Shown piece after piece: positions 15,826 through 43,441 of a stretch of DNA of 64,000 bases. The DNA lies in sequence record NC_048170.1; one strand, 5' to 3'. A model generated the notes under the pieces. The model saw only the letters and a program-made list of their open reading frames with translations. It was not told the DNA's origin and did no database searches. Positions within the stretch are counted from its first letter, which is position 1. Each line of letters opens with the position of its first letter. The translations under genes and the position numbers were made by a program.

Positions 15826-16719
15826 TTAATCAGCAGTGTTATAACCGAATACTGCTTTACCGTAGGTGTGGGTACCGTTAGCTAATGACAGCACCAACAC
15901 ATGGTTGTACGTAGCGTTAACACCATTGTCGGTAGAACTGGTGGTAGCACCGTTATAGACAAAGGTAGCTGTTTGCAGATTGGCTTTCAGCTCGGTGATG
16001 ATCTCATCACTTACACCGGTCTGCTCTTTGATCAGCGTGGTCAGGTTACCTGCCAGGCTTTCATTGATCTTGGTTTCGTTATTGGTAATCCCCTGTAAAC
16101 CTGCAGTGTAGGTGCTGAAGTCTAACGGATAGGTTAACAGACGTGCTGACGTTTTGGTACCATCGCCTTCATCAACGTAGGTTAAGTTACCCAGGTTGGT
16201 AACCTTGATGATGTTAGCCAGATCCAGCGTAGTGTTATAAACTTTAACTTGAACAGAGCCATACCACGCCAACGAATCTTCTTTGGCTTCCAGGGTGATC
16301 GTCTGGATACCATGCTCGTTGAAGGTAACCGGATTAGATAACGTATCGGCTTTGATGTCTTTATCTTTATCCAGGAACTTCTCACCGGTCGGCGTGATCA
16401 TACCGTAGCGTTGAGCTACAAGGTCAACCACATCACCGATGGTGGTGTCAGCAGTAACGTTAACACGTACAGCGATTTTCTGGAACCACTTAGCCAGATC
16501 CAGACGATGGTAGGTAACATCGCGGTTATTGAAGTAAGGGGTACCTTCACCAGGGCTAAGCGTTAAAGTTGCGTCTGGAGCAGAATCACTTTTGGATTTA
16601 AGGACGTATTTAAGGTCGGTATATTTGAAGTTGGCACCAGTGTCAGTGTTGAGTTTGTTAATCTCATCAACGATAAGTTGCCAAGGTGTTTTTAAAGTAA
16701 GCGATACTTGAGTTGCCAT
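15826..16719 (-). CDS. Virion structural protein, phiKZ gp131-like paralog family (297 aa)
   Basis: YHRLDL and AWYGSVQV motifs shared with ORFs at 16862, 27787, 29609 and 30471; strongly biased high-expression codons. Confidence 0.8.
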   Translation of the reverse strand: MATQVSLTLKTPWQLIVDEINKLNTDTGANFKYTDLKYVLKSKSDSAPDATLTLSPGEGTPYFNNRDVTYHRLDLAKWFQKIAVRVNVTADTTIGDVVDLVAQRYGMITPTGEKFLDKDKDIKADTLSNPVTFNEHGIQTITLEAKEDSLAWYGSVQVKVYNTTLDLANIIKVTNLGNLTYVDEGDGTKTSARLLTYPLDFSTYTAGLQGITNNETKINESLAGNLTTLIKEQTGVSDEIITELKANLQTATFVYNGATTSSTDNGVNATYNHVLVLSLANGTHTYGKAVFGYNTAD

Positions 16720-16861
16720 TTTCTACCTCTATGGTTGTTACATCACTCTCAAAAGATGTAAGTGTTTACAGAAATCAGTATATTTTATATTAATGTAAAT
16801 ATTATGGAGAACGACTCCGATTCTCCTTTTCGACCATCAAAAAATCAGAGGATACACAATC

Positions 16862-17404
16862 ATGGCCTTAGACTTTAACAAAGCAGCAAAATCCCTTCTG
16901 CTTGATCTTATCAACACCAAAGCAACCCGTTCACTGGCCGAACAAGAACTGCAGTTCGGTACTCCGGCGGCATCTTTCGAACATTCTAAGAACACCGTTA
17001 TTCAGCTGGACGCTGCGCCTGAAGCAGAAAACCTGCAGGGTACTCAGCAGTTCTACTACGATCGTCTGGCTCTGTCTGACGTTTTCGCTGATGTAACCGG
17101 CGATGTTACTTTCGAACTGCCGCACGGTACCGACAGCATTCAGGCTTCTGAACTGGTGAACAAACTGGTCACCAAATTCGGCCTGGCTTCACTGAACGGT
17201 GAAATCAAAGAAGAAACCTTCCAGCTGTCTGGAGGTACTGTTGGTCAGGTAACTCTGAATGCGATCGAGAACGGCCTGGTATATACCGGCACTCTGCAGG
17301 TTGCTCTGACCTATGCAGCAGCACCGAAAGACCAACTGGCAACCGTTCTGGCGGATAACGTAGCTGATGGCTTCGTGAAACCGACCGTTAGCGTTGTTGG
17401 CTAA
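16862..17404 (+). CDS. Short gp131-like virion protein (180 aa) ending in the shared docking-like motif
   Basis: YYDRLAL and VYTGTLQV family motifs; lacks the family C-terminal domain; high-expression codon bias; GAGGA RBS. Confidence 0.85.
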   Translation: MALDFNKAAKSLLLDLINTKATRSLAEQELQFGTPAASFEHSKNTVIQLDAAPEAENLQGTQQFYYDRLALSDVFADVTGDVTFELPHGTDSIQASELVNKLVTKFGLASLNGEIKEETFQLSGGTVGQVTLNAIENGLVYTGTLQVALTYAAAPKDQLATVLADNVADGFVKPTVSVVG

Positions 17405-17603
17405 TAAGCACATAGAGCAATAGTATGGGTTTTGTACAGCTCGGCTATTGCTCTTCTACAATTTGGTTGTAACAATCTGCGTGGTTGCACGCTTATCTTT
17501 CTCATTGAGCGCTTCGTATGAAGCGTGGTGTTGAAAGGGTTGTGGATCTCCTCAAGCGGCCAGGGACCCAGACCAACCTGAATAAACACAAACAAACCTT
17601 AAG

Positions 17604-17636
17604 CCCCTCCTCAGCCCTTATCGGGTTGGGGAGGGG
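17604..17636. terminator. Hairpin family variant between convergent genes
   Basis: cccctcc...gccc-ttatc-gggt...gggagggg. Confidence 0.7.
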
Positions 17637-17699
17637 TCTTATACGTCTTTATGCGTTTCGTTCGTTCTGGAGCGTTTTAGGGCGGTTTACGACAGGGTT

Positions 17700-18335
17700 T
17701 TATTCAACACTGAAACCATTCAAACAGATAGCTTCATAACGCTTACGTTCACGACGTTTACGCGCCTGCCAGCCGTAAATAAACTTCTCGTCTTTCTCAC
17801 GACGTTCAGCTAATTCGATGTAATAGGTGCTCTGCATATCCAGCATCGCATCGATGAGATAATCCTTACCGGTTGCGCCACGCTTAGCGATATAAGCATC
17901 AAGAGCCGCCAGTGTTTTGGGGCCCATTGCGCCATCAGCGTCGATATCTTTCCAGTAAGTTTGACGGTTGTTCATGACGTTCAGGTAACGCTGGAGGTTC
18001 TTAACCGCAACCGTTTTACCTGCATTGATACCCAGGTCAAAGAGACGGTCAGCTAAAAACACAGAACGTTTCATGACGTCATCAAGTTTCATTTTATCCC
18101 AGAAATGGGTCTTGTAGATAAAGAACGCCATTTCCGTGGTAAGGTTACGCATGTTACCGTTCCAGCCGAATTTCGTTTTCAGCGTGGTTTTGTATTGATC
18201 AGCAAGCGCTTGCGTAATGCCGTGGTTTGTACATTTTCCGCTGTCGTCTGGGTCATCAACATACCCGCCTTCAACATCGGTTTTGTCGCGAATGATGAAT
18301 TCGCAGGTAAAATCTTTTTCAGTAATCTTAGCCAT
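17700..18335 (-). CDS. Endolysin, glycoside hydrolase family 108 with C-terminal peptidoglycan-binding domain
   Basis: EGGYVDDPDDSG..TNHGIT catalytic motif; DLGINAG; DG.MGPKTL; FIYGW. Confidence 0.92.
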   Translation of the reverse strand: MAKITEKDFTCEFIIRDKTDVEGGYVDDPDDSGKCTNHGITQALADQYKTTLKTKFGWNGNMRNLTTEMAFFIYKTHFWDKMKLDDVMKRSVFLADRLFDLGINAGKTVAVKNLQRYLNVMNNRQTYWKDIDADGAMGPKTLAALDAYIAKRGATGKDYLIDAMLDMQSTYYIELAERREKDEKFIYGWQARKRRERKRYEAICLNGFSVE

Positions 18336-18461
18336 TAGAACTCCTCGTTGGAATAACGATTTAGAGGAACAGGAAGGGTCTAGAACGCGATAAACGATTT
18401 AATCCAGGCAAACCCCAGGTTAAACTTTTCGAAGCGTTACAACGCGTTCTAGAACGTTGAA

Positions 18462-20510
18462 TTAAATACCCTTGGTTCCTTTCACGTGATGTGCGATTTC
18501 TTCAACCATTGCACGCAGAGCACGAAGCTGTTGGTCGTGTTCGTACCAACCACCTAACAGAACCCCGCTATACACCATGGTGTCAAGACTTAACAGTCCT
18601 TTATCTGATACGTTGATCATTTCAGGGAACTGTTCTTGAACACGCTGTGCGATAACACCGATCTTCTCGACATCAGGATCGTAGTTGTGACGGAAACGGG
18701 CAAGCCCACTGCGCGCCATTTCACGTAAACGTTCACTGAGAGATTCCGGATGATCTTTCAGATAACGAATGTCGTGTTTACTACGTTCATCCGAGCGAAT
18801 GTAAGCGTTAGGAACATCGATATTGCTGTTGAAGTACAGCGCACTACCACCGCCTGCAGAGTTCCCCCAATAGAAGCGTGTGATCTCACCGCCGCCATTT
18901 TCCGTGATGATAACATGTTTACCTAAACGCGTACCACCATTACCATCAACGAAGACCAGTTTGTTTCCGCTGTAAGAACCCCAGAACAAGCGTGTATCGA
19001 TGATGTGTGTTGCAGCGAGACGGGCGTTACGTGGTGTAGAATACACGGTGTTAACATCTTGCTGCGCATGTGCATCGGAAGCGATACCATAGTTCTGTAC
19101 GTTACCCAATCCCACCTGCGCTTTCGTAACAGCGTGAGGGTTATCCCGACGGTTAGCGTGAGCGTTAACCAGATCACCCGCTAATTTCTGAATTGCCCAG
19201 TTGGTAGACTGTGGTGTCATGTAACGGTTCGTTGCAGAACCACCTTGCGCTTCAGCTTGGTTAGCGGTTGGGTAGTTCTCAACACTTCCTAACCCTACTT
19301 GTGCTTTAGACACTTGGTGTGGGTTATTCTTGTCAGCGATATGCGCATTAAGCGGAACTAACGCAAAGGTCTCAATGGACGCTTTGGTTGTGTTCGGTGC
19401 CATTAATCGGTTAGCTGCAACACCGGCACGCGCTTCTTCTTCAGAAGCCATTGGGTAGTCTTGCACATTCCCCAACCCAACCTGCGCTTTGGTTACCCTG
19501 TGTGGGTTGTTGTAATCGGCTTTATGCGCATTAAGTGGGATCAATGCGAACTGTTCAATCGATGCAGCGGTGCGTAGCGGCGTCATGAAACGGTTGTTCG
19601 CTGTTCCGGCTTTCGCCTCTTCATCCGAAGCGGTCGGGAAGTTATCAACGTTCCCAAGGTTAACCTGTGCTTTGGTGACGCTATGTGGGTTATCCCGACG
19701 GTTAGCATGCGCGTCGACCAGATCACCCGCCAGTTTAGCAATCGCCCAGCCAACCGTCTGTGCGGTCATGTAGCGGTCAGGTGCAGTACCGGCTTCTGCC
19801 TCCGCCTTGTTTGCGGTAGGATAGTTCTGTACGTTACCTAGTCCGACTTGGGCTTTTGTTACTTCGTGTGGGTTATCGGTACGGTTAGCATGCGCGTAAT
19901 GCAGATCGGTCAGATCTTTATCCGCCGCTTGCATGTCTTTGCGTAGCTGATCGATTGCCGCCCAGAGACGGTTATCGGACGCAGCATCACCGATAAGTAT
20001 TGCGGCTTTTAACGAATAGATCGCTAAGCAAAGATGTTCGGTACCGTAAATAGCACTAACGTGGTGGATGTGTGGCTCAGGCGGATAAAGTTCCGGTTTG
20101 TTCTTGATGTCATCCCAGTTGATCGGACGATCGTCAAGTTTGAGTTCTTCGATAGCCTGATATAACGCGTCAATAAGACTTACGTAAACACCACCGATGA
20201 TACGATAGTCGTTAACTAACGTCCCCTCGATATCATCGTTGATAATGGCGATGGCTGCACAGATTTCTTTACCCGCGTAAAGCGTTGCATCCTGGTACAA
20301 GAAAATGGGTTTATAATCCACGCCTCGTACCAGTGTCTTACCGGTAAGCTTTTCAGTGATGACCAGACTTTCGGTGAAGAACGGTCCGCCATCAAGGGCG
20401 TAACATTTATTCTCGGTTCGTGGAACGGTATGCTCTTCACCAACGATGTGGTTGCTGGCGAGTGTACCGGTCCAGTCCTCGGGGTACTTCAGGGTAATTG
20501 GTGTCGACAT
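18462..20510 (-). CDS. Tail fibre with five NPH repeats and a C-terminal intramolecular chaperone (peptidase S74-like)
   Basis: 5x HxxxxxNPHxV(T/S)KAQVxLGxV; SDERSK auto-cleavage motif; IGVIAQRVQEQFPEMI. Confidence 0.88.
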   Translation of the reverse strand: MSTPITLKYPEDWTGTLASNHIVGEEHTVPRTENKCYALDGGPFFTESLVITEKLTGKTLVRGVDYKPIFLYQDATLYAGKEICAAIAIINDDIEGTLVNDYRIIGGVYVSLIDALYQAIEELKLDDRPINWDDIKNKPELYPPEPHIHHVSAIYGTEHLCLAIYSLKAAILIGDAASDNRLWAAIDQLRKDMQAADKDLTDLHYAHANRTDNPHEVTKAQVGLGNVQNYPTANKAEAEAGTAPDRYMTAQTVGWAIAKLAGDLVDAHANRRDNPHSVTKAQVNLGNVDNFPTASDEEAKAGTANNRFMTPLRTAASIEQFALIPLNAHKADYNNPHRVTKAQVGLGNVQDYPMASEEEARAGVAANRLMAPNTTKASIETFALVPLNAHIADKNNPHQVSKAQVGLGSVENYPTANQAEAQGGSATNRYMTPQSTNWAIQKLAGDLVNAHANRRDNPHAVTKAQVGLGNVQNYGIASDAHAQQDVNTVYSTPRNARLAATHIIDTRLFWGSYSGNKLVFVDGNGGTRLGKHVIITENGGGEITRFYWGNSAGGGSALYFNSNIDVPNAYIRSDERSKHDIRYLKDHPESLSERLREMARSGLARFRHNYDPDVEKIGVIAQRVQEQFPEMINVSDKGLLSLDTMVYSGVLLGGWYEHDQQLRALRAMVEEIAHHVKGTKGI

Positions 20511-20523
20511 AACCTGGAGGTCC

Positions 20524-23127: not shown

Positions 23128-23139
23128 TATTCACCTCGA

Positions 23140-23625: not shown

Positions 23626-23629
23626 GCGG

Positions 23630-24145: not shown

Positions 24146-24173
24146 GTCCTATCGAAAAATAAAAAGAAGGAAA

Positions 24174-24190
24174 GGTGGGTAGAACCCACC
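24174..24190 (-). terminator. Probable terminator
   Basis: ggtgggt-aga-acccacc followed by a U-rich run on the minus strand. Confidence 0.55.
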
Positions 24191-24196
24191 CATCCG

Positions 24197-26350
24197 TTAT
24201 AACGTTTCGAAGTCGGTTGCTTTGATAACCGCGTTGAAGTTGGCAAGGAATTCCTTAAGCAGTGCTTGGAAGACATCACGAAACGCTGTGTTCGTCTGCA
24301 AGCTGGTTAAATAATCGTTCTTAAGGTAATCGCTCAGCTTACCGATCTTCTGCATCTTCTCGCCGTCTTGGTTCTCTCCAGGTTCTTGGCTGTTGATGTT
24401 AACCCATTTGATCCCTTCGAGATCGCCATCGGCAAGGAAGTTGGCGGGTGTCTCATCGTCGTTCAGGATTTTAATCGTATCACTGGATTCAATGCCACCG
24501 TAAGCTTCCAGAAGCTGGTTGACTGTTAGCTTATTGGTGTTGATTGAACCATTGACACCATCGATACCGATGCCTGCACCTGTGATGGATGTCGCCGAAA
24601 GATCGATCGGTCCGGTTAACTTACCACCGTTGATCGGTAACGCACCAACTTGCTCAGCGGTGTGTGTATGGTCAGCTAACGCCGCAAACGCCACGATAGA
24701 CTTATATGTCGAATACGGCGTCATATACGCTGATTGGTTGGTGTTGTCAGCCGCTTCAGTATCGGTAGCGATATTAAAGTTCTGCACGTTGCTGAGACCG
24801 ACCTGCACCTTCGTTACTTCATGCGGGTTGTTCTTATTGACAACGTGTGCTGCAAAACCATCACCAGCTAAAGCAGTGATTGCCGCTTTTGTCGCAGCCG
24901 GTGTCATATAGCGGTTGGTTGCTTCACCCGTTTGCGCCTCTTCGTCGGAAGCAACAGGATAGTTCTCAACGCTTCCCAAACCGACCTGAGATTTTGTTAC
25001 TTGGTGTGGGTTTTCGGTATTCGCAATATGACTACTGAACCCTTGACCCGCCAGTTGCTCGATTGCGTAACGAACAAGTATTGGTGTCATGTACTTGTTG
25101 TTAACTTGACCATCGATAGCTTCTTGGGTGGTGGCAACCCCGAAGTTTTGCACGCTCCCCAACCCAACTTGCGCTTTCGTAACAGCGTGGGGGTTATTGG
25201 TGTTACCGATGTGATCGGTAACCGTTGGGGTGATTAATCCTGCGATAGCGGCTGCCGTGGTCGCAGGGGTCATGTATTTATCGTTAGCAACACCCGCAGC
25301 AGCTTCTACGTTAGATGCTACACCGTAGTTCAATACATTTCCTAACCCAACCTGCGCCTTGGTTACCCCGTGGGGGTTGTTCTTGTCTCCGGTATGGGTT
25401 GTCAACGTAGCGTTAACGTTATCGATACGCGTGCTTAAGCTATCAGTGATTGCTTTGATTGCGGCTCGTACACCCGCTGGTGTTGTGTACAGATCTGTGG
25501 CCGTACCGGTAATGGTTGTATTACTATCGGCTACACCGTAGTTCTCAACGTTTCCGAGTCCCACCTGGGCTTTCGTTACCTTGTGTGGGTTGTTGTAGTT
25601 GCTGATGTGCGCAGCAGCACTATCACCACTCAGGTTAGCGATCATCTTACGCGTCATCGCCAACGTCATGTACAGATTTTCACCGATGGTTTCCAGATCG
25701 CTCTCGGTCGCCGTTGTGAAGTTCTGAACATTTCCTAACCCAACCTGCGCCTTGGTTACCCCGTGGGGGTTATCGCGACGATTCTCGTGCTGCAGCAATG
25801 CAGTCATTGCTTTATTGAACCCTTCTTCAAGCGGTTCTTTCAATGATTCGATTGCAGCCACCACATCGTCCCACGTCATTGTGTCGGTTTCGACATTATG
25901 TTGGTGGTTGATTGGCGGGAATACGGAAGGAACGTCAGCAACCTTTTCCCAGAACGTAACGCGAGGGTCGTAAAGGTTGTTGGCTAAAACGTTAAGAATT
26001 TGTTGTTGATCAAGTGTAAACTCACCCCCCAGTGAATAGTAGTTCAGTTGCAACTGTCCACTGAATGCGGTGTCCAACAGCATGATGGAACCGTATAATT
26101 CCAGGCCGGTCAGCGCAGCCATGGCACGGAAGGGGTGAGTGCATAAAAAGTCAACGCCTTCTTCCAGATACGCGTTTGTTTCAGGGTTGTAGATCTTTAA
26201 CCCATTGCGAAAATATGGCGCGTATTTAGGAACGAGAAAGTTAAATCCGGTCCCCGTGGAAGGACGGACAGTGACGAGTTCTTCTGGAACCCATGCGCCA
26301 TCCAAATTCCCCTGCGGGTTATACGGAAGGCGTTTAATTTCATCTGTCAT
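24197..26350 (-). CDS. Tail fibre with six NPH repeats (phiKZ gp145/gp146-like)
   Basis: 6x HxxxxxNPHxVTKxQVGLxxV; N-terminal attachment domain paralogous to the 682-aa fibre. Confidence 0.88.
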   Translation of the reverse strand: MTDEIKRLPYNPQGNLDGAWVPEELVTVRPSTGTGFNFLVPKYAPYFRNGLKIYNPETNAYLEEGVDFLCTHPFRAMAALTGLELYGSIMLLDTAFSGQLQLNYYSLGGEFTLDQQQILNVLANNLYDPRVTFWEKVADVPSVFPPINHQHNVETDTMTWDDVVAAIESLKEPLEEGFNKAMTALLQHENRRDNPHGVTKAQVGLGNVQNFTTATESDLETIGENLYMTLAMTRKMIANLSGDSAAAHISNYNNPHKVTKAQVGLGNVENYGVADSNTTITGTATDLYTTPAGVRAAIKAITDSLSTRIDNVNATLTTHTGDKNNPHGVTKAQVGLGNVLNYGVASNVEAAAGVANDKYMTPATTAAAIAGLITPTVTDHIGNTNNPHAVTKAQVGLGSVQNFGVATTQEAIDGQVNNKYMTPILVRYAIEQLAGQGFSSHIANTENPHQVTKSQVGLGSVENYPVASDEEAQTGEATNRYMTPAATKAAITALAGDGFAAHVVNKNNPHEVTKVQVGLSNVQNFNIATDTEAADNTNQSAYMTPYSTYKSIVAFAALADHTHTAEQVGALPINGGKLTGPIDLSATSITGAGIGIDGVNGSINTNKLTVNQLLEAYGGIESSDTIKILNDDETPANFLADGDLEGIKWVNINSQEPGENQDGEKMQKIGKLSDYLKNDYLTSLQTNTAFRDVFQALLKEFLANFNAVIKATDFETL
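25335..25771. repeat. Exact 44-bp direct repeat (25335-25378 and 25728-25771)
   Basis: acatttcctaacccaacctgcgccttggttaccccgtgggggtt is present twice. Confidence 0.9.
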
Positions 26351-26454
26351 GATGCGCCCTTTACAAGTTGTTAGTAAGTATGGGATACCCTGGGGTATCC
26401 TGTGTTAACAGCGGTAAAATATTACTGTAACTATAAAATAAGGGGGCCTCTCCC

Positions 26455-27735: not shown

Positions 27736-27745
27736 CCAAACATAA

Positions 27746-27777
27746 CCCTCCTCCAACCCGTAAGGGAAGGAGGAGGG
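27746..27777. terminator. Hairpin family copy between convergent genes
   Basis: ccctcctcc-AA-ccc-GTAA-ggg-AA-ggaggaggg, flanked by CATA and TATG. Confidence 0.85.
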
Positions 27778-27786: not shown

Positions 27787-28692
27787 TTATGCTACATATA
27801 ACGTCAGATAACCGTCGATGAGCGTATTCATCACACTGAGCTGAAGTACGACAGCTTTACTAACATCTGTACGTACACCGAACGGTAGTGTTTTGAATTG
27901 CTCTGGATCGGCTATTACTTGCGCATTCTGCAAGTTGAGCGGTCCAGGCATTGCTGATAATACCCAGCGATCGTTGACCATAAGGCCGTCGATCTCTTCA
28001 GAGAGACCCAATTGCAGTGCGTTCATTTCTGCGATTAGTGCCTCCGATTGCGTATCGCCTGAGGTTAGCGTATACCCATCGGTAAGCGATGCCAGAACAC
28101 CAGCAGATACGAACCAGTTGTACGAAACAATAGCGCCTGGGAGTTTACTGCTATCTCGATCGATGATATAATTCAACCCAGCCAACATATTGTTGCGAAC
28201 GAGGTTGTTGAGGTCGTTATGTCCTGAGGTTAACTCAACAAGTAACTGACCAACCCATACTTGGTTACCGGGTTTAGGTGTTATCACAACCTGTATCGGT
28301 GACTTGGATTTATCCAGATCCGCGTCGACAATCTCGGTTTTGTTGAGAAGGATACCGTACGTCGATGCTAAGACAGGTAGGATCTCAGAGACCTTGGTTA
28401 GTGCATCTAAGGTTTCGATCTCGATAGGCCAGCGGTGCTGTCCGCCAGACCAAGTACCTAGTTTACCAAGATCGATGCGGTTATAATAGATGTCGACAGA
28501 GTTCACCAGCCCTGAACCCGGTTGGGGATGCACGGTTAACTTGCTGTTACGCTTGTACCCGGTGCTTTCAGAAGCCTCACCGATAACCAGTTTATCCAGC
28601 GTTACGCCTCGAGCATCGAAATCGCTATGCTTTCGAATCAGCCGAAAGAGGATTTCTTTCGATTCTAACCCTAGGATTTCACTGTACTCCAT
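27787..28692 (-). CDS. gp131-like virion protein (301 aa)
   Basis: YYNRIDL and VWVGQLLV family motifs; C-terminal GYLTLY. Confidence 0.8.
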   Translation of the reverse strand: MEYSEILGLESKEILFRLIRKHSDFDARGVTLDKLVIGEASESTGYKRNSKLTVHPQPGSGLVNSVDIYYNRIDLGKLGTWSGGQHRWPIEIETLDALTKVSEILPVLASTYGILLNKTEIVDADLDKSKSPIQVVITPKPGNQVWVGQLLVELTSGHNDLNNLVRNNMLAGLNYIIDRDSSKLPGAIVSYNWFVSAGVLASLTDGYTLTSGDTQSEALIAEMNALQLGLSEEIDGLMVNDRWVLSAMPGPLNLQNAQVIADPEQFKTLPFGVRTDVSKAVVLQLSVMNTLIDGYLTLYVA

Positions 28693-28707: not shown

Positions 28708-29592
28708 TTACGGTAGGATTTCTGCGCCCGTCGGGCCTGCCTTACGAGCTTCCAACGCACCAAGGTCGTATTTCAGTGTCAGCGTATCGTTGGTAGTATA
28801 AAGGTTGTGGTAAGTCGAAATCAGATCGGTAACCTGCGCGCCGACGATTTCGTTCATGTCGAAGGCCGAACCTTGACCATCATCAGCACGAACGATTTTA
28901 TCGCCAGCAGAGACCATCCCGATTTCAGAAATAACCGCGTACTCTTCACCACCTTCGGTGAGTTTAGCCACATTGAGATATTCGTTAATATCCCACGGCG
29001 TCCAAACCAAAGAGACTTTACAGCTGTAGTCGTAGTACTCTCCGGTCGCTACCAGAATTCCGGTTGTTGGGATATCCGGTCGGGTGGGGTTGAGGTTCTT
29101 GTCGGTTGGGTGCCATTCGATGGTCTGAGCGACGCCGTCGACGTATTTGGTATAACGCATGGAGCGGACAACGTTATCGAAATCGATGCGACGACCGTAA
29201 TAACAGATATACTTTTTACCGCTTTCCAGTGTCTCAATACGACGTAACCCAAATTTAGCGCGTTCGTCTGTGGTCAAATCGTTACCAACTTCACGCATCA
29301 CGAACGGCTTGATTTTCCACGGTGAAAGATCGCTTGCTTCGTGAGCGATCGGCATCGAGGAAGGGATACCGTTAGCGTTGCGGATGAATTCATGACCTTG
29401 GTTGCCGATACAGAAGTAACGTACAGCAGGATTACCCTCGGGGTAAACCTTTGATTGAATCTGAAGCTTTTCATTCAAGGTGCTGTGTTCTTCCCATGCA
29501 TGAGGAAGACCGAGCGTAAGGTTAGTTTGTACTTGACCGCCGATAATCGTACGGACGATACGATCGGTAGCACGGATTTGTGTAGAAGCCAT
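28708..29592 (-). CDS. Baseplate/virion protein (294 aa; phiKZ gp130-like)
   Basis: YFCIGNQGH, PFVMR and ISEIGMVS pattern; syntenic position. Confidence 0.7.
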   Translation of the reverse strand: MASTQIRATDRIVRTIIGGQVQTNLTLGLPHAWEEHSTLNEKLQIQSKVYPEGNPAVRYFCIGNQGHEFIRNANGIPSSMPIAHEASDLSPWKIKPFVMREVGNDLTTDERAKFGLRRIETLESGKKYICYYGRRIDFDNVVRSMRYTKYVDGVAQTIEWHPTDKNLNPTRPDIPTTGILVATGEYYDYSCKVSLVWTPWDINEYLNVAKLTEGGEEYAVISEIGMVSAGDKIVRADDGQGSAFDMNEIVGAQVTDLISTYHNLYTTNDTLTLKYDLGALEARKAGPTGAEILP

Positions 29593-29608: not shown

Positions 29609-30460
29609 TCAGTTATATTGCATCAACAGGATACCGCCGTAGTTCGTGCAGTAATCTTGGCTAAGCGTAACGATAACAGCGTTAGCGAACGCAGGGTTAA
29701 CAGGATAACCCTGTGCGATAAGTTCTGTTGTTTTACCGGTTGCAAGCACGGTGGCTCCGTAAAGGTTGTTTTCGTCTTCACGGCCGTTATAAACCCATGG
29801 GGTTGGCGCAACGTTGTTGAATAAGCTAACCAATGCGCTTAAGTTGCCACCAACTTTTAACCCGGCGAGATCGGAACGGATAGCTGTACAGTCTATAGCG
29901 TAACTGTAGACCAATGCCTGGATACGATTTGCGGTGTAGTACGGGAAATTGAGACCGGTCATCACCGTGGACTTCATCATCCCCGCAATATCGCGTGCGC
30001 TATCGAGGAGGTAGAACGTGACACTTCCCGTCCAAGCCAATCCGGTTGTTTTCAACTCTACGGTGTGAGGGAACGGATATTCATCACCTCGTACAATCGG
30101 AGAATCGACGCAGCTATCCTGATCGATAACGATTCCGTACGTTGATTGAATCAGAGGGATAAGATCGTGCGTTGTTCTAACCCCGGCATCGATAGCAAGC
30201 TTCGGTTCCATTCCCAAGAAGAAGTCTTGAATAGGGATACGATCGTACCATACGTAGCTGCTTTCACGGTATTGTGCCGGTGTTACTGTTGCCGAAGGGG
30301 ATACCTTAGCGCGAGTGTTTCGGCTATACGCGTGGTTTCCGTTTTCAGCAACATCCGTGATATCAAGTGCATCGAAGTTAAAGTCGAAGTCAGGATTGGC
30401 TGCCTGAATAAGTTCAGCGACCAGTACTTTAGGACTTTTGTTTAACAATTTCTGACTCAT
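29609..30460 (-). CDS. gp131-like virion protein (283 aa)
   Basis: WYDRIPI and AWTGSV family motifs; C-terminal GGILLMQYN. Confidence 0.8.
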   Translation of the reverse strand: MSQKLLNKSPKVLVAELIQAANPDFDFNFDALDITDVAENGNHAYSRNTRAKVSPSATVTPAQYRESSYVWYDRIPIQDFFLGMEPKLAIDAGVRTTHDLIPLIQSTYGIVIDQDSCVDSPIVRGDEYPFPHTVELKTTGLAWTGSVTFYLLDSARDIAGMMKSTVMTGLNFPYYTANRIQALVYSYAIDCTAIRSDLAGLKVGGNLSALVSLFNNVAPTPWVYNGREDENNLYGATVLATGKTTELIAQGYPVNPAFANAVIVTLSQDYCTNYGGILLMQYN

Positions 30461-30470: not shown

Positions 30471-31406
30471 TTAGCCTTGTTCTTCTGGAGAACGACCCTG
30501 GAGGCTTGCGGTATGTCCGTCGACGTTGTAATAGAAAATCAATGGACCGCCGACGGCAGTACAGTAGTTTTCATCCAGACCGATCTCGATACCGTATTGG
30601 TAACCCGCTCGTGCTGGAATACGTCCGCCTAACTCGCCGTTGAAAGCCACTTTAGCGTTATACAGGTTATACGGTGCTGCGTTGTCGTCTAATACCCAAC
30701 GATCGGCGGTCATTTCAGCCAGAAGATCGGCGACCACCACATCGCTAATGACGGTACCTGTTACCAGCGAAGCTAGCAACTCACCGTAATCAGAAGTATC
30801 GCGACTGTAACTGTAGATCTCACCGCTAGCGCGTACGCCCTGTCCGAAGAACTTAAGACCATCAAGCTCTTTGATCGCGATAATATCATCAAGATTCGGT
30901 ACACGCGATTTCATCAAGATACGAACACTTCCCGTCCAAGCCAGGCAGCTAGATACGACACGGAGCAATTGTCCGTTAACGGTATCCCAGTTAAGTTCGT
31001 CGTTGACAATTTCTTCCGCGGTAAGGCCAAGACCGAAACGTTCTTTGATGATAGGCCAGATATCACGCATCTTGGTGGCGTCTGGCGCATCGATAAGAAT
31101 AGGCGCTACGTTACGCAGATACGCACCGATATTGATACGATCGTAATACAGCGTCGTCGAACCTTCATAATCGTCTAACTCGGTAAGCTTAGCGGTTGCT
31201 GTCGCCGTAATCTGGGTGTCGCGCTCGTAGGCGCTTTGGTTGGTGGTTGGTGTTCCTAAAACCAATAATTCAGGGGTTAGAACATGCTCTCCGTTCTGAG
31301 GTGGGTTATCGTGGTTGATAAGACCATACACGAGATCGGATGAGGGTAAAGAGACGTCGACCGGGTAAAGTTCGGTGTCGTCAATAGTTGTTACCGTATC
31401 ACTCAC
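30471..31406 (-). CDS. gp131-like virion protein (~311 aa)
   Basis: YYDRINI and AWTGSV motifs; GGAGG RBS before GTG at 31406. Confidence 0.8.
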   Translation of the reverse strand: MSDTVTTIDDTELYPVDVSLPSSDLVYGLINHDNPPQNGEHVLTPELLVLGTPTTNQSAYERDTQITATATAKLTELDDYEGSTTLYYDRINIGAYLRNVAPILIDAPDATKMRDIWPIIKERFGLGLTAEEIVNDELNWDTVNGQLLRVVSSCLAWTGSVRILMKSRVPNLDDIIAIKELDGLKFFGQGVRASGEIYSYSRDTSDYGELLASLVTGTVISDVVVADLLAEMTADRWVLDDNAAPYNLYNAKVAFNGELGGRIPARAGYQYGIEIGLDENYCTAVGGPLIFYYNVDGHTASLQGRSPEEQG

Positions 31407-31465
31407 GGTGACCTCCACGCCAGGAATTAATTAAAAAAGACTTTACGATTTGCAGCGCTATCACG

Positions 31466-33877
31466 TTAAGCGTCCTCGATAGGCAAAGGTTTAACAATCA
31501 AACGATTGAGCGGATTCGATAGACGCATACTGATAGGCTTATACGCAACATGATTCGTCTCACTTAGAGCCACTGATCTGAAACGACCGTTCAACTGTTT
31601 GTAAATCGGCTCTATCCAGAGACCTTGAAGATCGCGTTTACGGAAACGTTGTTCGAACGGTTTGATCGGGGTTACGGTCAACCCACGCAACGACTCTGAT
31701 GGCAGACGTTCACGAAGGTCGCGCGGTGCCCGACCTGGGAACGGCGCAAGCCACAACCCGTCAAGCGGATTTTTACGGAAACGTAACGAGATAGGATCAC
31801 TGATGACTTGTGCCCAATATTGCGTACTGAATCGAACGGTTTGGGTGTTCTCGTAACCACTACAATCACACCAGGTTGGTTTCGGAGGCGCTTCCAAACT
31901 TTCAACCGCTGATTCACGCCAGTTCGTCATCGGGTTGTTATCATGCACGAATTTGATAACTTCCGTAGCCTGGTTATCCGTATCATGAACGTTTGCCTGT
32001 GCCCAGTCTTCCCACAGTTCTTCACTACCACTTACTAAACTCGAACCAAGACGGACGGCAATTTTGTTTAGTGGTTTGATTGGATCACTGTTGATTGTCT
32101 GGATAAAATGGATGGTGTAACTGCTCAATGTCTTAAGCAGCTGCAGCATTCCGTATTGAATATCCTTAAGACTGGTGACATCTTCCAAATCTTGACCGGT
32201 GGCCTTTGTGAAGATATCGAGAGCCAGAATTCCCGCCTCTTCTTGACTGATTGCGTCAAGCTCCCAATCCATCGCTAAGAACCATTCCTTGTAAAGCTGC
32301 CCAATACCGAAGTCGACACCAACATCCATGTAAAAGTTTTCAACGATGGCTTCAGCCATACCTCGAGCTTGATAATGCTCTTGGAGCTGGTACATGAACT
32401 GATGACGACGCCAGCCCTGGTAGATCTCGGTAACGGCGGTCAGAAACTCTTCAGTACTGACGACAGCACGCAGCGTCACTTGTTTATCCAAACACCACCA
32501 GATCAGTTTATCGGGAATGATAGCAGGATCGGTAATGCTACGGAGATGGTCGAATGTCGGTAGCGTTAACACCCTGACATGGTTAGCATGGATCTTAGGT
32601 ACTTCAATCAGCGTCATGCCCATCGAATAGTTCAGCAAATACAAGAACAGCTTGTATGCATCTTTCATCGACATCGTCATGGTATCACCCGTCACCGGGT
32701 TGGTTGTCGTTAACCGTGACTGATACATGCCTATTGCGCTAAGATGAATCCATTCATTCAGCAGGAAATCATACTTAGGATACAATTCACTGTCTGTAAG
32801 GTCTTCGGCTTCACTTTCCAACACCTTGGTCGTTAAGGTATTGTTGTCGTGCATCGACATCTTCTCTATCGTGCGGTTAAGCTCGGTATAATACTCCGCT
32901 TCGTTATCCCGCGCTAAAGGGAACTGTTGCTGCATCACGGTGGTGACCTTACGTCTTACCGTGCCATTACCGACGATCTCTTGAAGGTTAAGCGGTTTAC
33001 GCTCCATGTAAACTGCGGGTTTTAACGTTTGGGGTATCTCGGAAGCGTCTTGTTTGATCGAGAACGCACCGATTGGAATCCCACGATCGGTTAATACCTT
33101 TTGAATGAGCTTATCGTAGTTTTCCGTCCTACCCATGTTTCGTTCAACGTAAGCGATGTTACGATAGAACCAGAGCATTTGGGATTCGGTCATGTATCGC
33201 TTGAATCGATCGAGACCTTGATGGCTTGCCAGATAACTCCAGATATGGAAGCTATGGGCATAATGGGTATGACAGTTTTCCCAACGAATACCTTTTATCA
33301 TCTCAGGTATTTGTGTGAATAGAATGGCGTATAGCGCAGGCCAATGAAGCATATCGACGCTCTCATATGCCGGATGTTCCCAGCGTCTGAAGTAATCGTC
33401 GATTTCTTGCTGTAAACGTGGAATAAGATTGGCCTCGCGTGACTCAACCTCTTGTGTATCGTACCAGAGAATCTCGTGATTGCGGGCTGCAATTGCTTTC
33501 TCGATATCGATGGGGTTAAGGATACCCAAGATCAACATACGTTGTTCCGGGTACCGCGCAATTAAACGATTGAAATAATCTCCACCATACGCGTATTCCC
33601 TTGCCGTCATGCGATGCCGTAACATGTTTTCCTTGGTGAACTCGATCTCTTCGAGCGTATCCAGGGAATTTACGGTCATCATTGTCTGACAAGGATGATA
33701 CTCGCCAGCGAGATTCATGTAGTATAACCACGTGCGTGGGTCGTCCCCGACGGCCATCTGGTAGACTTCGGAAACCTTGAGGTTTAACCGTTCTGCCGTG
33801 ATGTCGCTTTTAATAATCAGGGTGTCCGTTAGACGCTGCACGCTTTCCGAATAAAGCTGATAGTCAGTGTTGGACAC
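31466..33877 (-). CDS. Large virion/baseplate protein (~803 aa; phiKZ gp128-like)
   Basis: WLYYMNLAGEYH motif; divergent from the portal as in phiKZ-like phages; GGAGG RBS before GTG at 33877. Confidence 0.8.
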   Translation of the reverse strand: MSNTDYQLYSESVQRLTDTLIIKSDITAERLNLKVSEVYQMAVGDDPRTWLYYMNLAGEYHPCQTMMTVNSLDTLEEIEFTKENMLRHRMTAREYAYGGDYFNRLIARYPEQRMLILGILNPIDIEKAIAARNHEILWYDTQEVESREANLIPRLQQEIDDYFRRWEHPAYESVDMLHWPALYAILFTQIPEMIKGIRWENCHTHYAHSFHIWSYLASHQGLDRFKRYMTESQMLWFYRNIAYVERNMGRTENYDKLIQKVLTDRGIPIGAFSIKQDASEIPQTLKPAVYMERKPLNLQEIVGNGTVRRKVTTVMQQQFPLARDNEAEYYTELNRTIEKMSMHDNNTLTTKVLESEAEDLTDSELYPKYDFLLNEWIHLSAIGMYQSRLTTTNPVTGDTMTMSMKDAYKLFLYLLNYSMGMTLIEVPKIHANHVRVLTLPTFDHLRSITDPAIIPDKLIWWCLDKQVTLRAVVSTEEFLTAVTEIYQGWRRHQFMYQLQEHYQARGMAEAIVENFYMDVGVDFGIGQLYKEWFLAMDWELDAISQEEAGILALDIFTKATGQDLEDVTSLKDIQYGMLQLLKTLSSYTIHFIQTINSDPIKPLNKIAVRLGSSLVSGSEELWEDWAQANVHDTDNQATEVIKFVHDNNPMTNWRESAVESLEAPPKPTWCDCSGYENTQTVRFSTQYWAQVISDPISLRFRKNPLDGLWLAPFPGRAPRDLRERLPSESLRGLTVTPIKPFEQRFRKRDLQGLWIEPIYKQLNGRFRSVALSETNHVAYKPISMRLSNPLNRLIVKPLPIEDA

Positions 33878-33904
33878 GATCGGTCCTCCAAGGAGCCAGT
33901 GTAA

Positions 33905-36814: not shown

Positions 36815-36845
36815 ACGGATATAAAAAAAAATAACACATAGTTAA

Positions 36846-36880
36846 CCTTCTCCCCAACCCGATGAGGGAAGGGGAGAAGG
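36846..36880. terminator. Hairpin family copy between convergent genes
   Basis: ccttctcccc-AA-ccc-gatga-ggg-AA-ggggagaagg. Confidence 0.85.
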
Positions 36881-36897
36881 GCTATGCGCTATTTAAT

Positions 36898-37173
36898 TTA
36901 TTTCGAGGTTAACCACGATTCAATTGTGGTGAGTTTGCTTCTCAGTACGCGCCAACTAGGGTGTGGTGGGATCACAGCGCCATTGTCGATTACGGTTAGC
37001 TGAACCTGGTACTTCTGTTGCATACGTGCTACCGTGTCGCTTATCGAGAGGAAAAGCTGGTAACGTTCATATGCCGTCAGTTCACTGTCCTGTTGAACTG
37101 CGTTGGCTGCTAACGTAATTTCGCGTAAGTCCTTTGCATCCACAGAGACGGTAATGAGTTTATATTGACTCAT
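36898..37173 (-). CDS. Hypothetical protein (91 aa)
   Basis: AAGGA RBS; ends next to a hairpin. Confidence 0.7.
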   Translation of the reverse strand: MSQYKLITVSVDAKDLREITLAANAVQQDSELTAYERYQLFLSISDTVARMQQKYQVQLTVIDNGAVIPPHPSWRVLRSKLTTIESWLTSK

Positions 37174-37234
37174 ACGGTTTCCTTATCAACTGGGGTATTG
37201 CAAATACAATACCCGTCGTCGGACGATAAGTTAA

Positions 37235-39793: not shown

Positions 39794-39827
39794 TTCTTAC
39801 GATCCTTTTTATTTATTCGGTTATGTG

Positions 39828-41627
39828 TCAATCGATTATGTCGCGATCGTTAATTTCTACAATTTCTTCATCGAATCGACCGACGTCTTTCTTCAAGCCT
39901 GCATTGGTTGCTGCAACGTCATTTGCAATTTGTGGGGTAATGATTAACCGACCGCGCTCATCGATAGGTGCGTACATACTGAACTTCTGACGTCCGGTTG
40001 GTTCGGAGTGTGGAAGATTCAGATAGCTTGCACAGAACGGGATGGAACCACTAACCAAACGACTCTCGTCAGCCAATGCAGCACCGCCTGCGTTTTGGCT
40101 CTGGAGAACAACATGCGTGCTCACTTTGAACAGCATGCAATCACCAGGTGACTGAATCGATGTTGCCACTTTCTCACGTTTATCACGATTGCTCTGGATA
40201 TTGAGAATCGCTTCCGTTGCAACTTGATTTCGCAACGCCTTCTGTACATCGCGATTGGTCATCTCTTTACGGTTGTTCTGTCGTTTACCACGTTCTGTGG
40301 TTTTAAGATGGAACCCCAGTTTAAAGATGCTCTTACGCACATCCTCCATGACATATTCCAACACCATCAATTCCTTACCGAACATCGTCGTGGTATCAAC
40401 ACGACTCATTTCGATAGTGACATTGTCAATCAGATACGCCATAAATTCGTAGAAGTCGTCGCAAGGAATATTTTCCTGTTTGAACTTCTTCTGTTGAATC
40501 TCGTCAACGTAAAGATCGAGACTGTCGATGTGGTGGTTTACATCACGCAACAAACGCGCATCCGCATTGTTGTTATTAAAGATAATCAAACCGAGTAATG
40601 TACGCCAATGGTCTGGCGCATTCGCGAACTCCTCAACCGGATAGTCTTCCGGAAAACGATCGTAATAACGGTCGATGAGATACAAGAATGCACCGACAAG
40701 GCCAAGAACAATACGTTCCGTGCCTCCACGTCTTACAGCAATTTGAATATCAGGATGTTTGTAACGTACAGCGCTAGCGCTACGGCTTTTACCGCTTTTG
40801 CTGATACTAAAGCCTTTAGGAATAACCCCCATGGTGCGATAGATTACCCATTGGTCACGCGGAAAATCACGTTCAGCAAGGTTCCGTCCGGTTACGGCTT
40901 CGACACCTGCAAAACGTCGGAAACACTCACCCACCCCGTACTTCGCAAAGAGATAGTGACCCAGTGTGGTTACGCTGGTGTGGTTGATGTTGTCACCGTT
41001 CACTTTACTTTGTTTAGTAAGATGATAGATTTGCGACCAGGGTAATGACAGGTAATGACGATAATCGATACCGGTCGGTGTATCATTGCTCAGGAACTGA
41101 TACGGTGTACGTTTAACCGTGATTTTGTCACGCGGAAGCATGATGAACGCCATGTCTTTCGTGTAACTGATTACGGGGTCAGCGAGTACCGCACTGAGAA
41201 TGAAGTTCGCACCACGTAGACGCATTTTACCACCCTGACCTACCGCGGGCAATAGGAGAGGATGTCGGATAATGCAGTAGTCCTTTCCTGGTTCACGACG
41301 GTCACCTGATTCCATCGCGCCGTACCAGCGGAATTCCAGCATCACCATAAACACATCGGAAGGCGCAAGGTCGAAGGTCAGCTTACCGCTATCCTTCCCT
41401 TTGGTTTTCTTTCCTCCGCTTAAGTAGTGGAACTGTTCGCGGGCCATACAACGACGCAGGCCATGATACACCAGATCCTTAGGTAAACTATCTTTGCTGT
41501 TCCGCCAAAGACGATCAACATAGGACTCAACATCTTGCATCTTATCGACGACGATGTTGCGTGCTATCTTCTCGTTCATCTTCGGTGCAAGCTCAGCGAC
41601 AGCTTTGCAGAATCTAGGATCCATCAC
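39828..41627 (-). CDS. Non-virion RNA polymerase beta-type subunit (phiKZ gp123-like)
   Basis: HPLLLPAVGQGGKM..RG..F..SAVLADP and FGKELMVLEYVM segments; position two genes downstream of the MCP. Confidence 0.75.
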   Translation of the reverse strand: MMDPRFCKAVAELAPKMNEKIARNIVVDKMQDVESYVDRLWRNSKDSLPKDLVYHGLRRCMAREQFHYLSGGKKTKGKDSGKLTFDLAPSDVFMVMLEFRWYGAMESGDRREPGKDYCIIRHPLLLPAVGQGGKMRLRGANFILSAVLADPVISYTKDMAFIMLPRDKITVKRTPYQFLSNDTPTGIDYRHYLSLPWSQIYHLTKQSKVNGDNINHTSVTTLGHYLFAKYGVGECFRRFAGVEAVTGRNLAERDFPRDQWVIYRTMGVIPKGFSISKSGKSRSASAVRYKHPDIQIAVRRGGTERIVLGLVGAFLYLIDRYYDRFPEDYPVEEFANAPDHWRTLLGLIIFNNNNADARLLRDVNHHIDSLDLYVDEIQQKKFKQENIPCDDFYEFMAYLIDNVTIEMSRVDTTTMFGKELMVLEYVMEDVRKSIFKLGFHLKTTERGKRQNNRKEMTNRDVQKALRNQVATEAILNIQSNRDKREKVATSIQSPGDCMLFKVSTHVVLQSQNAGGAALADESRLVSGSIPFCASYLNLPHSEPTGRQKFSMYAPIDERGRLIITPQIANDVAATNAGLKKDVGRFDEEIVEINDRDIID

Positions 41628-41663
41628 ACACTCCTTTCAGAAAGTTGCTTAAGCAGATTAAAG

Positions 41664-43100
41664 TTACTTTTTCGATGACGCCTTCTCAAGAATCTTGAAA
41701 AAGGTCATACCTATACCGACAACAGCCGCGGTTATACTCGCAGCGGCTTTCCAAACATCGACGTTACGTTGACGTCGCGCTTCTTCCGCTTCACGTTGTC
41801 TTTTTGCCTCTTCATCACGTCGACGTATCTCAGCCGCAAACTCGTCATGCTTACGTTTGGCTTCTTCGTCTCGACGACGAAGTTCAGCGACGAATTCTTC
41901 ATGTTTGCGTTTAGCCTCGTCGTCACGACGTTTTAAATCAGCTTGATAATCTTCGTGTATTTGTCTACGTAGATCATCTTGACGTTTCATTTCGGCTTGG
42001 TGTTGTTCCATCCTACGTTTTTGTTCGTCTTTAAGCTGATCGAGTTCGGCTTTATGTTGTTCATCACGCAGCTTTGCGTCGGCGCGATGCGCCTCATGCA
42101 TCTGTGCGATAACTGCCTTGTGTTCATCCGCCATACGTCGCATTTCAGCCATCACCCCTTTAAGGGTTTCTTCTGATGCCTTACGTTCGTAGCTACGTTG
42201 GTCGAAATCATTTTTGTAGGCTTCTTTTTGGATGGGGTCGCGCCAATGCAATGCCGATTCACGCGTCGGAAAAACATTGTACTTCCACATCTCTTTTTCC
42301 AAATCTTCGACCGGTACGAAGACGGAGTCATTATTCCCGAAGGTAACCAACATACCTGGCGCGCCTGCTCCATTCGTTGGTTTTATTTCGAACGCTTTCC
42401 CCAACACGTTAACCCATAAGCTATACGGATTATGAAAGTCGGGCGGCGTCCAATGGATAGTGAGTTGCGTTCCGAGAATCCGGAAACCCTCTGTTTTTCC
42501 CGTCAAGCTCCGCGCGCACGTTGCGATGTAGGGGTGATCAATCCCTTTCGTAACGTGGTCTGCGCTTTTGTATTCTCCTTTAACTTTTACGATTGCCACG
42601 TTGATTTGCGCGACATAAGCGGGTTGATTAAAGTTCAACGTGTTGAGGTCAATTTGACATATTTCATCCAGCGTATCGTACCAGTCTTGCTGGTCTAATA
42701 GACGCGGCATTTTCTCTGTGTTAACAATACGACGGATATGCGGTTTCCTTATCGCGTAACCTGTGCCGTTTTTAACACGGAGTATATCCCGACGTCTACC
42801 CGCGTAGACGAAGTTTCTGAATGCACCATTCGCATTAGATACGTCATGGCTGTCAACTATTACAGGACTACGAAATTTTGAACGTCGTACGATCCTGAAT
42901 GTATTGCCGTCCTCAACCCTACCAGGAATGTACTGGAACATATTGTCGGAGGTGATAACCAACACGGTATGGCCAGATTCATTAATACATGCCCATCCTA
43001 ATTCCAGGTCATATAACGGTTCAGCATAACCGTCAATGCGATATGCGTGCGTACCATCCCACGGTTCGAACGCAGTATCACATATTGGCATGGAGGGCAT
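41664..43100 (-). CDS. Early protein with charged coiled-coil repeats and C-terminal TM anchor (~478 aa; phiKZ gp122-like by synteny)
   Basis: GGAGG RBS before ATG at 43100; 3x 18-aa E/R/K repeats; hydrophobic AAASITAAVVGIGMTFF near the end. Confidence 0.85.
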   Translation of the reverse strand: MPSMPICDTAFEPWDGTHAYRIDGYAEPLYDLELGWACINESGHTVLVITSDNMFQYIPGRVEDGNTFRIVRRSKFRSPVIVDSHDVSNANGAFRNFVYAGRRRDILRVKNGTGYAIRKPHIRRIVNTEKMPRLLDQQDWYDTLDEICQIDLNTLNFNQPAYVAQINVAIVKVKGEYKSADHVTKGIDHPYIATCARSLTGKTEGFRILGTQLTIHWTPPDFHNPYSLWVNVLGKAFEIKPTNGAGAPGMLVTFGNNDSVFVPVEDLEKEMWKYNVFPTRESALHWRDPIQKEAYKNDFDQRSYERKASEETLKGVMAEMRRMADEHKAVIAQMHEAHRADAKLRDEQHKAELDQLKDEQKRRMEQHQAEMKRQDDLRRQIHEDYQADLKRRDDEAKRKHEEFVAELRRRDEEAKRKHDEFAAEIRRRDEEAKRQREAEEARRQRNVDVWKAAASITAAVVGIGMTFFKILEKASSKK

Positions 43101-43250
43101 CGTCAACCTCCATCAGATTGAAAACTATCACGCATAATACATTTCCCTTTTTCTTGTTCTTATCAAGCCGACAGCCGACGGTTTCAGCATCGTTCCTAGC
43201 GCGAGAACGACCTTACGTGTTGTCTATGCCTTATTCATCGCAGGCGTCTG

Positions 43251-43275
43251 TCACCTAGGTAATGTAAGCGTCAAA
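43251..43275 (-). promoter_or_regulatory. Early promoter motif, core TACATTAC
   Basis: Minus strand tttgacgctTACATTACctaggtga, right after the MCP terminator and upstream of the operon carrying the nvRNAP subunit. Confidence 0.75.
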
Positions 43276-43309
43276 TTTTTTCTATTCGCAACGATAAACG
43301 GCATAGAAA

Positions 43310-43339
43310 CCTCCCCCAACCCTTACGGGCTGAGGGAGG
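43310..43339 (-). terminator. Hairpin family variant ending the MCP transcript
   Basis: Minus strand cctccc...ccc-GTAA-ggg...gggagg, then tttctatg. Confidence 0.75.
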
Positions 43340-43351
43340 CTGACTTATGTA

Positions 43352-43441
43352 TCACGGTGCCGGATGAATGTCCGGTGCAATGAAACCATCTGCAACGTTG
43401 TCATCAAGAATATCATCCAACGAAGCAGCTACGGTAGTTCA
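43352..43441 (-). other. In-frame readthrough extension of the MCP (UGA + 28 codons + UGA)
   Basis: ...VQTN-TGA-TTVAASLDDILDDNVADGFIAPDIHPAP-TGA; matches the C-terminus of the 180-aa virion protein. Confidence 0.7.

Follow-up and report, generated by a model that had tools for sequence, protein, structure and literature searches.

The window analysed here, a stretch of 64,000 nucleotides, is 100% identical to bases 1-64000 of the Escherichia phage vB_EcoM_Goslar (hereafter Goslar), and its coordinates are those of the phage genome. Goslar is a nucleus-forming jumbo phage with a double-stranded DNA (dsDNA) genome of 237 kb. The region singled out by a first-pass annotation begins with gp22, reaches as far as the 3' end of gp41, the major capsid gene, and contains five genes of the DUF7941 family, gp22, gp23, gp31, gp33 and gp34 (Table 1). 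Their products share a 16-residue motif, which is best read as the docking peptide, or plug, of DUF7941 fibre proteins: a short amphipathic helix followed by an extended stretch, placed directly after the N-domain. The same motif is encoded behind the TGA stop codon of gp41. The account favoured here, with modest confidence, is that recoding at this codon gives a minority of the Goslar capsid subunits a fibre-docking plug, which would seed DUF7941 filaments on the phage head.

Table 1. Features of the Goslar window and of related loci
Feature	Position	Strand	Remarks
gp22, two-domain DUF7941 protein	15826..16719	-	linker motif 16174-16221; Pfam E 2.6e-52; linker profile 21.8 bits
gp23, short DUF7941 protein, N-domain and C-terminal plug	16862..17404	+	plug 17336-17383; 180 amino acids
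gp29 fibre site	24299..24337	-	rejected as chance
gp31, two-domain DUF7941 protein	27787..28692	-	linker motif 28165-28212; Pfam, alignment, linker profile
gp32 (DUF7208), baseplate spoke protein	28708..29592	-	Pfam match; candidate partner of gp35 repeats
gp33, two-domain DUF7941 protein	29609..30460	-	linker motif 29942-29989; Pfam, alignment, linker profile
gp34, two-domain DUF7941 protein	30471..31418 (annotated start 31406)	-	linker motif 30846-30893; Pfam, alignment, linker profile
gp35, upper-wedge baseplate protein	31466..33877	-	C-terminal five-unit repeat 31481-31792
GC-rich terminator-like hairpin after the stop of the tail	43308..43341	-	fold z-score -4.5 for 43290-43450
Proposed readthrough tail, 28 in-frame codons	43355..43438	-	closed by second TGA 43352-43354
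16-residue plug motif within the tail	43373..43420	-	seven-residue identical run shared with the gp23 plug
Major capsid gene gp41, 740 amino acids	43439..45661	-	Pfam PhiKZ_MCP E 5e-218; stop TGA 43439-43441, then A
Capsid-gene ends with TAA-G and plug in the +1 frame	L071, L077, L078, L079, L093, L115, L121		about 3640-3720 in L079
Element of about 17 bases	L066, L069, L070, L071, L076-L079, L093, L115, L121		downstream of the capsid gene

All five proteins match the Pfam profile of DUF7941 (PF25613) with 72-215 bits, against a cut-off of 27. Their copies of the motif occupy the same alignment columns directly after the N-domain, and the five sites therefore represent one conserved position. 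For the four two-domain paralogs, translation agrees with the segments cited in the first-pass annotation, and the 180-residue protein gp23 does end in the motif, as had been claimed. Since the Pfam match of gp23 covers profile positions 4-174 of 276, this protein consists of the N-domain and the motif alone. The family is large (2264 cluster representatives match the profile), and plug-terminal short forms are rare among its members, 7 of 144 diverse representatives. Across these 144 sequences, few columns of the protein are as constrained as those of the linker. Hydrophobic residues are found at position 1 in 99%, at position 4 in 77%, at position 5 in 90% and at positions 10 and 13 in 96% each; position 12 is Gly in 74%, and positions 15 and 16 are Tyr and Pro, respectively, in 71%. 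The C-terminal peptide of gp23 hardly changes in homologues with as little as 44% identity and constitutes the best-conserved part of the protein. A Gly-Phe plug is no hallmark of the short forms, as Phe occurs at that place in 21 of 137 long forms too.

The AlphaFold 2 (AF2) model of gp22 displays the layout of N-domain, linker and C-domain, with two confident domains and a less confident linker (predicted local distance difference test, pLDDT, 93.5 overall and 82-88 in the linker). In the gp23 model, a helix at residues 159-167 is followed by coil (pLDDT 74-76). The plug thus appears in the AF2 models as a short helix at motif positions 1-9 with coil behind it, at a confidence below that of the domains. 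The first-pass annotation had called the family gp131-like and had likened the docking to donor-strand complementation. Neither description found support. A profile of 134 DUF7941 sequences, compared with all chain sequences of the PDB (E <= 1), matched only phiKZ gp127 (E 5.6e-39), and Foldseek with the gp22 model likewise returned the gp127 chain as sole match; the presence of the gp131 N-domain in the PDB copy used is unconfirmed. Sequence searches of the PDB with gp31, gp23 and the capsid tail gave no useful match. DUF7941 resembles phiKZ gp126/gp127, not gp131. The plug is predicted as helix and coil with no strand, and the N-domain has no pilin-like fold match. The motif had also been considered as the helix of the six-helix bundles of phiKZ hexons or of gp131 fibres. 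This idea was dropped because the Goslar region equivalent to that capsid arm precedes the stop codon and because DUF7941 belongs to the gp126/127 family.

A functional model for these proteins was published in April 2026, in a preprint that solved the Goslar virion (Basu et al., bioRxiv 10.64898/2026.04.21.720040). Ten DUF7941 proteins are encoded in the Goslar genome, namely gp22, gp23, gp31, gp33, gp34 and five others, and mass spectrometry counted about 2140 copies of gp23 and about 580 of gp22 per virion. In head-to-tail dimers predicted with AlphaFold 3, the linker of one protomer docks onto the N-domain of the next, and purified gp22 forms filaments in vitro that were seen by negative stain. 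The authors proposed a 'fibre cloud' held at six peripheral baseplate sites; the assumption of six anchors gives filaments of about 3 microns. The linker is treated there as a disordered region with no sequence motif defined, and the preprint mentions no readthrough, stop codon, recoding or post-stop capsid tail (bioRxiv 10.64898/2026.04.21.720040). Two earlier suggestions, that the peptide after the shared N-domain binds the N-domain of another copy and that the very abundant gp23, made of domain and peptide, chains into fibres, agree with these dimers and filaments. As the preprint already proposes docking of linker to N-domain, the inference about the paralogs is independently corroborated and not new. 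The capsid-tail part appears to be new.

The product of gp41 is identical to the 740-residue capsid chains of the solved Goslar virion. Among 254 Goslar open reading frames (ORFs), TAA is the stop in 175 and TGA in 63, yet this minority stop is used by the most abundant virion gene. With A as the next base, the codon stands in a context favourable to UGA readthrough. The stretch behind it had been said to carry the same peptide as the DUF7941 proteins, and this is strongly backed by the comparative survey described below. Among all six-frame pieces of the window, the best local match of the tail is the C-terminus of gp23, with a score of 55; shuffled tails score 35.8 on average, and none of 200 reached 55. 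Four of the seven codons that encode the shared run have different third bases; the similarity is thus one of protein and not of DNA sequence, and a recent DNA copy of the gp23 3' end is ruled out as the source of the tail. The tail contains neither Lys nor Arg, and a tryptic peptide diagnostic of it would therefore span the stop. The TGA and the tail are kept in two other Goslar-like genomes, and all three substitutions found among the three genomes are synonymous and at third positions. Searches with tblastn for the 28-residue tail in phage genomes retrieved Goslar only. An exact DNA scan of IMG/VR with the back-translated seven-residue core yielded 43 hits, about the number expected by chance, of which only Goslar-like contigs were relevant.

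The tail should be part of the capsid mRNA, because the terminator-like hairpin follows it rather than precedes it. A simple terminator scan did not call this hairpin, which was revealed by RNA folding. No tRNA genes are present in the whole Goslar genome, and a phage-encoded suppressor tRNA is thereby ruled out.

A sequence profile was trained solely on DUF7941 linkers, with the capsid tails kept out of the training set. On capsid tails it gives 6.7-25.4 bits, and most tails lie above all decoys; the maximum is 9.1 bits for shuffled tails (99.9th percentile 7.6) and 9.3 for peptides of the reversed proteome. Tails that lack the motif obtain no score. The Goslar tail, at 9.5 bits, ranks first among the 298 post-stop peptides of the whole genome in any frame, the next one having 3.8 bits.

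The 3' ends of capsid genes were then compared across Chimalliviridae, with 84 distinct ends drawn from phage records, IMG/VR and Logan contigs. Of the 13 ends with TGA, 8 are followed by an in-frame plug, as against none of the 71 others (Fisher p = 3e-8, with no phylogenetic correction). These eight ends, in which TGA is followed by 18-28 in-frame codons with the motif, represent about five deep lineages: the Goslar clade, L056, L099-101, Burkholderia phage FLC9, Erwinia phage pEa_SNUABM_54 with L083/84, and L108/L120. Seven of the eight have A or C directly behind the TGA, and all three motif-less TGA ends that were read at this base have T. In about fifteen of the 84 ends the motif is fused to the C-terminus of the capsid protein with no stop codon in between, as in LucasX, RTH11, SA002, Proteus phage 10, the Agricanvirus group and several metagenomic lineages. 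A fused plug is likewise present in phage RAY. Seven further ends, all from uncultivated lineages, combine TAA and a following G with a motif in the +1 frame, which is open across the stop (Table 1). Two of these, L079 and L071, differ at 26 of 63 bases; read in the +1 frame, 12 differences are synonymous and 14 non-synonymous, against 1 and 22 in the other frames. Three of the seven have CCC as the P-site codon and the rest CCG or CAA, and no conserved start codon was found in this group. Judged from the sequences, a +1 frameshift may take place at the stop or close to it. The comparisons establish the identity of the motif and its distribution, and they reveal an in-frame extension under purifying selection both in the Goslar clade and in its relatives.

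Fused versions in other lineages could also mean that the Goslar tail is an untranslated relic, i.e., a formerly fused plug cut off by a nonsense mutation, or a stretch kept for some reason at the RNA level near the terminator. The complete loss of the tail in the nearest relative with a different capsid end would agree with a relic, and just three substitutions are available for the Goslar clade. This explanation is nevertheless improbable. Every one of the eight ends with an in-frame plug uses TGA and none TAA or TAG, and they are spread over some five deep lineages. Lineage L056, whose capsid protein is 78% identical to that of Goslar, has retained the TGA and an intact motif although its tail sequence has diverged, and the predicted hairpin lies after the tail and not inside it.

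Alternatively, translation could re-initiate behind the capsid stop and yield the plug as a free micropeptide, which would cap DUF7941 sockets and thereby limit or regulate filament growth. A TTG codon at the first motif residue in Goslar could serve such a start, and the motif of the TAA group does not share the reading frame of the capsid gene. Neither the TGA nor the TAA group, however, has a conserved start codon or ribosome-binding site, and several tails start with CTG right after the TGA. Independent ORFs would not give the strict pairing of TGA with frame 0 and of TAA-G with frame +1, and re-initiation is regarded as very improbable, still more so than a relic.

Under the favoured account of a leaky capsid stop, most ribosomes would end at the TGA and release the 740-residue capsid protein. 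A minority would read through the UGA, unaided by any phage tRNA, and so extend the C-terminal arm by the plug; these arms are located in the middle of the hexons. The model of the solved Goslar hexon reaches residue 740 and displays a central six-stranded barrel made of the six C-terminal arms (bioRxiv 10.64898/2026.04.21.720040). In phiKZ the corresponding arm belongs to a central six-helix bundle in hexons, and in pentons it touches a protein of the outer surface. Because the arms meet at the hexon centre, an extension would leave the shell there, and it probably points outward. Following the published AlphaFold 3 models and gp22 filaments, in which the plug would bind the N-domain, or socket, of the next protomer, the rare extended subunits would be translated, exposed outside and bound by the socket of gp23 or gp22, and DUF7941 filaments would start on the head. 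The efficiency of recoding would set the number of anchors per capsid. In relatives, a plug fused to the capsid protein, or one encoded in the +1 frame behind TAA, would have the same outcome.

Two observations agree with a plug that serves the DUF7941 proteins. At positions 12-13, the capsid plug equals the plug of the same phage's short DUF7941 protein, with Gly-Phe in Goslar, pEa_SNUABM_54 and FLC9 and Gly-Leu in RTH11. In addition, some 2700 copies of gp22 and gp23 are hard to fit on six baseplate anchors. The wider proposal, that Chimalliviridae employ a portable plug and set the number of capsid anchors by the way in which it is encoded (fused, behind a leaky UGA or reached by a +1 shift), with Goslar filaments seeded at hexon centres, is held more tentatively and falls a little short of an even chance.

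Several points weigh against anchoring on the Goslar head. The capsid maps show no assigned gp23 density on hexons, the DUF7941 proteins were located at the peripheral baseplate, and the virion mass spectrometry was searched against annotated proteins (bioRxiv 10.64898/2026.04.21.720040). Translation of the tail is inferred from the sequence. The gp23 plug varies between Asp and Glu at one position with no matching change in the capsid tail. On the generic family profile the Goslar tail gets only 9.5 bits, about the level of the best decoy, and the Goslar case therefore depends on the specific match to gp23 and on the findings in related phages. At 81% identity, the closest relative whose capsid gene ends differently has a TAA stop and is tail-less, and since many lineages are without any plug, the feature must be dispensable.

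Readthrough could also produce a tail with a role inside the capsid, where it would stabilise or plug the hexon centre or contact an assembly or docking factor, and its likeness to the linkers would then come from a shared small element. The absence of reported fibre density on Goslar heads would be explained, and the C-terminal arm itself oligomerises at the hexon centre, as a barrel in Goslar and as a six-helix bundle in phiKZ. Such a role is considered unlikely, albeit less so than a relic. The likeness extends over all 16 positions of the family motif and in several lineages includes the Tyr-Pro of the family, which lies outside the pattern of the first-pass annotation. Moreover, the capsid plug tracks the plug type of the short DUF7941 protein of the same phage, and the same plug was found on a baseplate protein, which has no hexon to stabilise.

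This baseplate protein (P0047, L137:10001-12520) is a homologue of gp35 with an extra C-terminal plug of the gp23 type. The capsid gene of that lineage ends in TAA and is tail-less, and the plug is identical at about 10 of 16 positions to the capsid tail of its sister lineage L056. Since a lineage devoid of a capsid tail bears the plug on its gp35 homologue, the plug behaves as a portable C-terminal module.

The motif had been reported at about eleven recurrent sites on the virion. The pattern is real: 8 occurrences were counted in 59 ORFs of the window against 1.34 expected from shuffling, and none of 300 shuffles reached 8. The count was too high, as the five paralog sites are one homologous position and the sites in gp35 and gp29 fail. 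The tandem array at the end of the 826-residue protein gp35 is a true, conserved five-unit repeat, with repeat positions that are invariant in homologues of about 50% identity. Its units, however, obtain at most 2 bits on the linker profile, inside the shuffle background, and the array is probably not the same motif as the DUF7941 plug. The site in the 717-residue fibre protein gp29, also proposed earlier, gives 7.3 bits as an isolated peptide and 0.1 in its protein context, when reversed decoys reach 9.3. A pattern hit in gp42 (46312-46359; 0.9 bits) is noise, and an ORF at 48944-49513 is at noise level on the same profile. The C-terminus of gp202, a lower-wedge baseplate protein encoded at 224422-225489 of the Goslar genome, contains a partial plug core and scores 11.1 bits on the linker profile, just above the 9.3 of the best decoy; it may be another anchoring site or a chance match.

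For the gp35 array, binding to the baseplate spoke is at least as likely as a plug role. Each of the five repeats might bind one of the five gp32 dimers of a spoke, and the array would thus act as a ruler or tether that ends at a DUF7941 protein. Five conserved units would correspond to five gp32/gp139-type dimers per spoke, a number found in Goslar and in phiKZ; in the latter these dimers run from the wedge protein to gp127. In Goslar, gp35 is placed in the upper wedge beside a gp32 dimer (bioRxiv 10.64898/2026.04.21.720040), and the failure of the repeats to match the linker profile points the same way. The support is a numerical agreement only, a Leu-x-Gly-Leu core is common to the repeats and the plug, and the relative described above adds a true plug right after its array, so the two elements may work together. 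Spoke binding is therefore advanced as a possibility, with less than even confidence.

Other features were noted near the capsid-gene ends. Directly after the terminator-like hairpin, a T run followed by ATGCCG is found at 43290-43305 of the window, and it recurs at the corresponding point of 64 out of 106 loci from relatives. It may represent a late promoter, or a start-site motif for the next gene, that has been conserved. Eleven related loci share an element of about 17 bases with an inverted-repeat core, situated between the capsid stop or tail and the terminator hairpin. It has no match in the Goslar window with up to 3 mismatches allowed. In the tail-less sister lineage L054, a gene for 179 amino acids (L054:12434-12973) with an N-terminus resembling GIY-YIG homing endonucleases directly follows the capsid gene and may be connected with the loss of the tail there. 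Ralstonia phage RP12 (L144) represents a weak partial case, in which the TGA is followed by 15 open in-frame codons with a partial Asp-Gly-Phe core (5.7 bits). In Pseudomonas phage D6 (L148), 28 in-frame codons are open after the capsid TGA and contain no motif.

If the capsid tail acts as proposed, the supposed place of attachment of the 'fibre cloud' in nucleus-forming jumbo phages would change, and filaments seeded on the head would explain the gp22 and gp23 copies better than six baseplate anchors do. Conserved stop-codon readthrough, and probably +1 frameshifting too, would operate in the capsid gene of large dsDNA phages, and jumbo dsDNA phages would thereby gain their first described case of conserved recoding in a capsid gene. 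Literature searches retrieved no paper that ties Chimalliviridae to recoding, a jumbo phage review of June 2026 mentions neither DUF7941 nor recoding, and nothing usable was found on head fibres in relatives with fused plugs. Current annotations and the solved Goslar capsid model miss a putative minority isoform of the capsid protein. The survey also defines exactly, at the level of sequence, the DUF7941 docking peptide that has been regarded in the literature as a disordered linker, and it yields a putative pair of 16-residue tag and socket that can be sought in existing mass-spectrometry and cryo-electron microscopy data.

Among known systems, the filament model of Basu et al. is the closest, with the same phage, the same proteins, the same idea of linker-to-N-domain docking and gp23 as the abundant short form. 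It differs in that anchoring is confined to the baseplate, whereas a proposed post-stop plug on the capsid and a defined motif are added here. In phiKZ, gp126 and gp127 belong to the outer peripheral baseplate; gp127 matches the DUF7941 profile, and its N-domain has the fold of the gp22 model. Only this N-domain is modelled in the phiKZ structure, no link to the capsid is known, and the 3' end of the phiKZ capsid gene lies outside the survey. Donor-strand exchange in the chaperone-usher pathway is similar insofar as a short peptide of one subunit fills a site on the next and linear polymers result. The DUF7941 plug, in contrast, is predicted as helix and coil, with no pilin-like fold match, and it comes after the domain rather than before it.

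For recoding at the end of a coat gene, two classical examples exist. In phage Q-beta, a leaky UGA of the coat gene leads to an in-frame extension, the A1 protein, and a small fraction of extended subunits is incorporated into the shell. Goslar resembles Q-beta in the UGA that ends the major coat gene and in the extension in frame, with readthrough being putative in Goslar. Q-beta is a small RNA phage with a large folded extension, whereas Goslar is a large dsDNA phage and the extension in its family is a putative docking peptide of 18-28 residues. In phage T7, a -1 frameshift near the end of the capsid gene (10A/10B) produces a longer minor capsid protein, whose 10B extension is not known to have a function. 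Both systems would have in common that the capsid gene is recoded at its 3' end and that a minority of the products is extended, and the closer parallel to T7 is offered by the relatives with TAA and a plug in the +1 frame. Their shift would be +1 at or near the stop instead of -1, and the extension that it would add carries a recognisable interaction motif.

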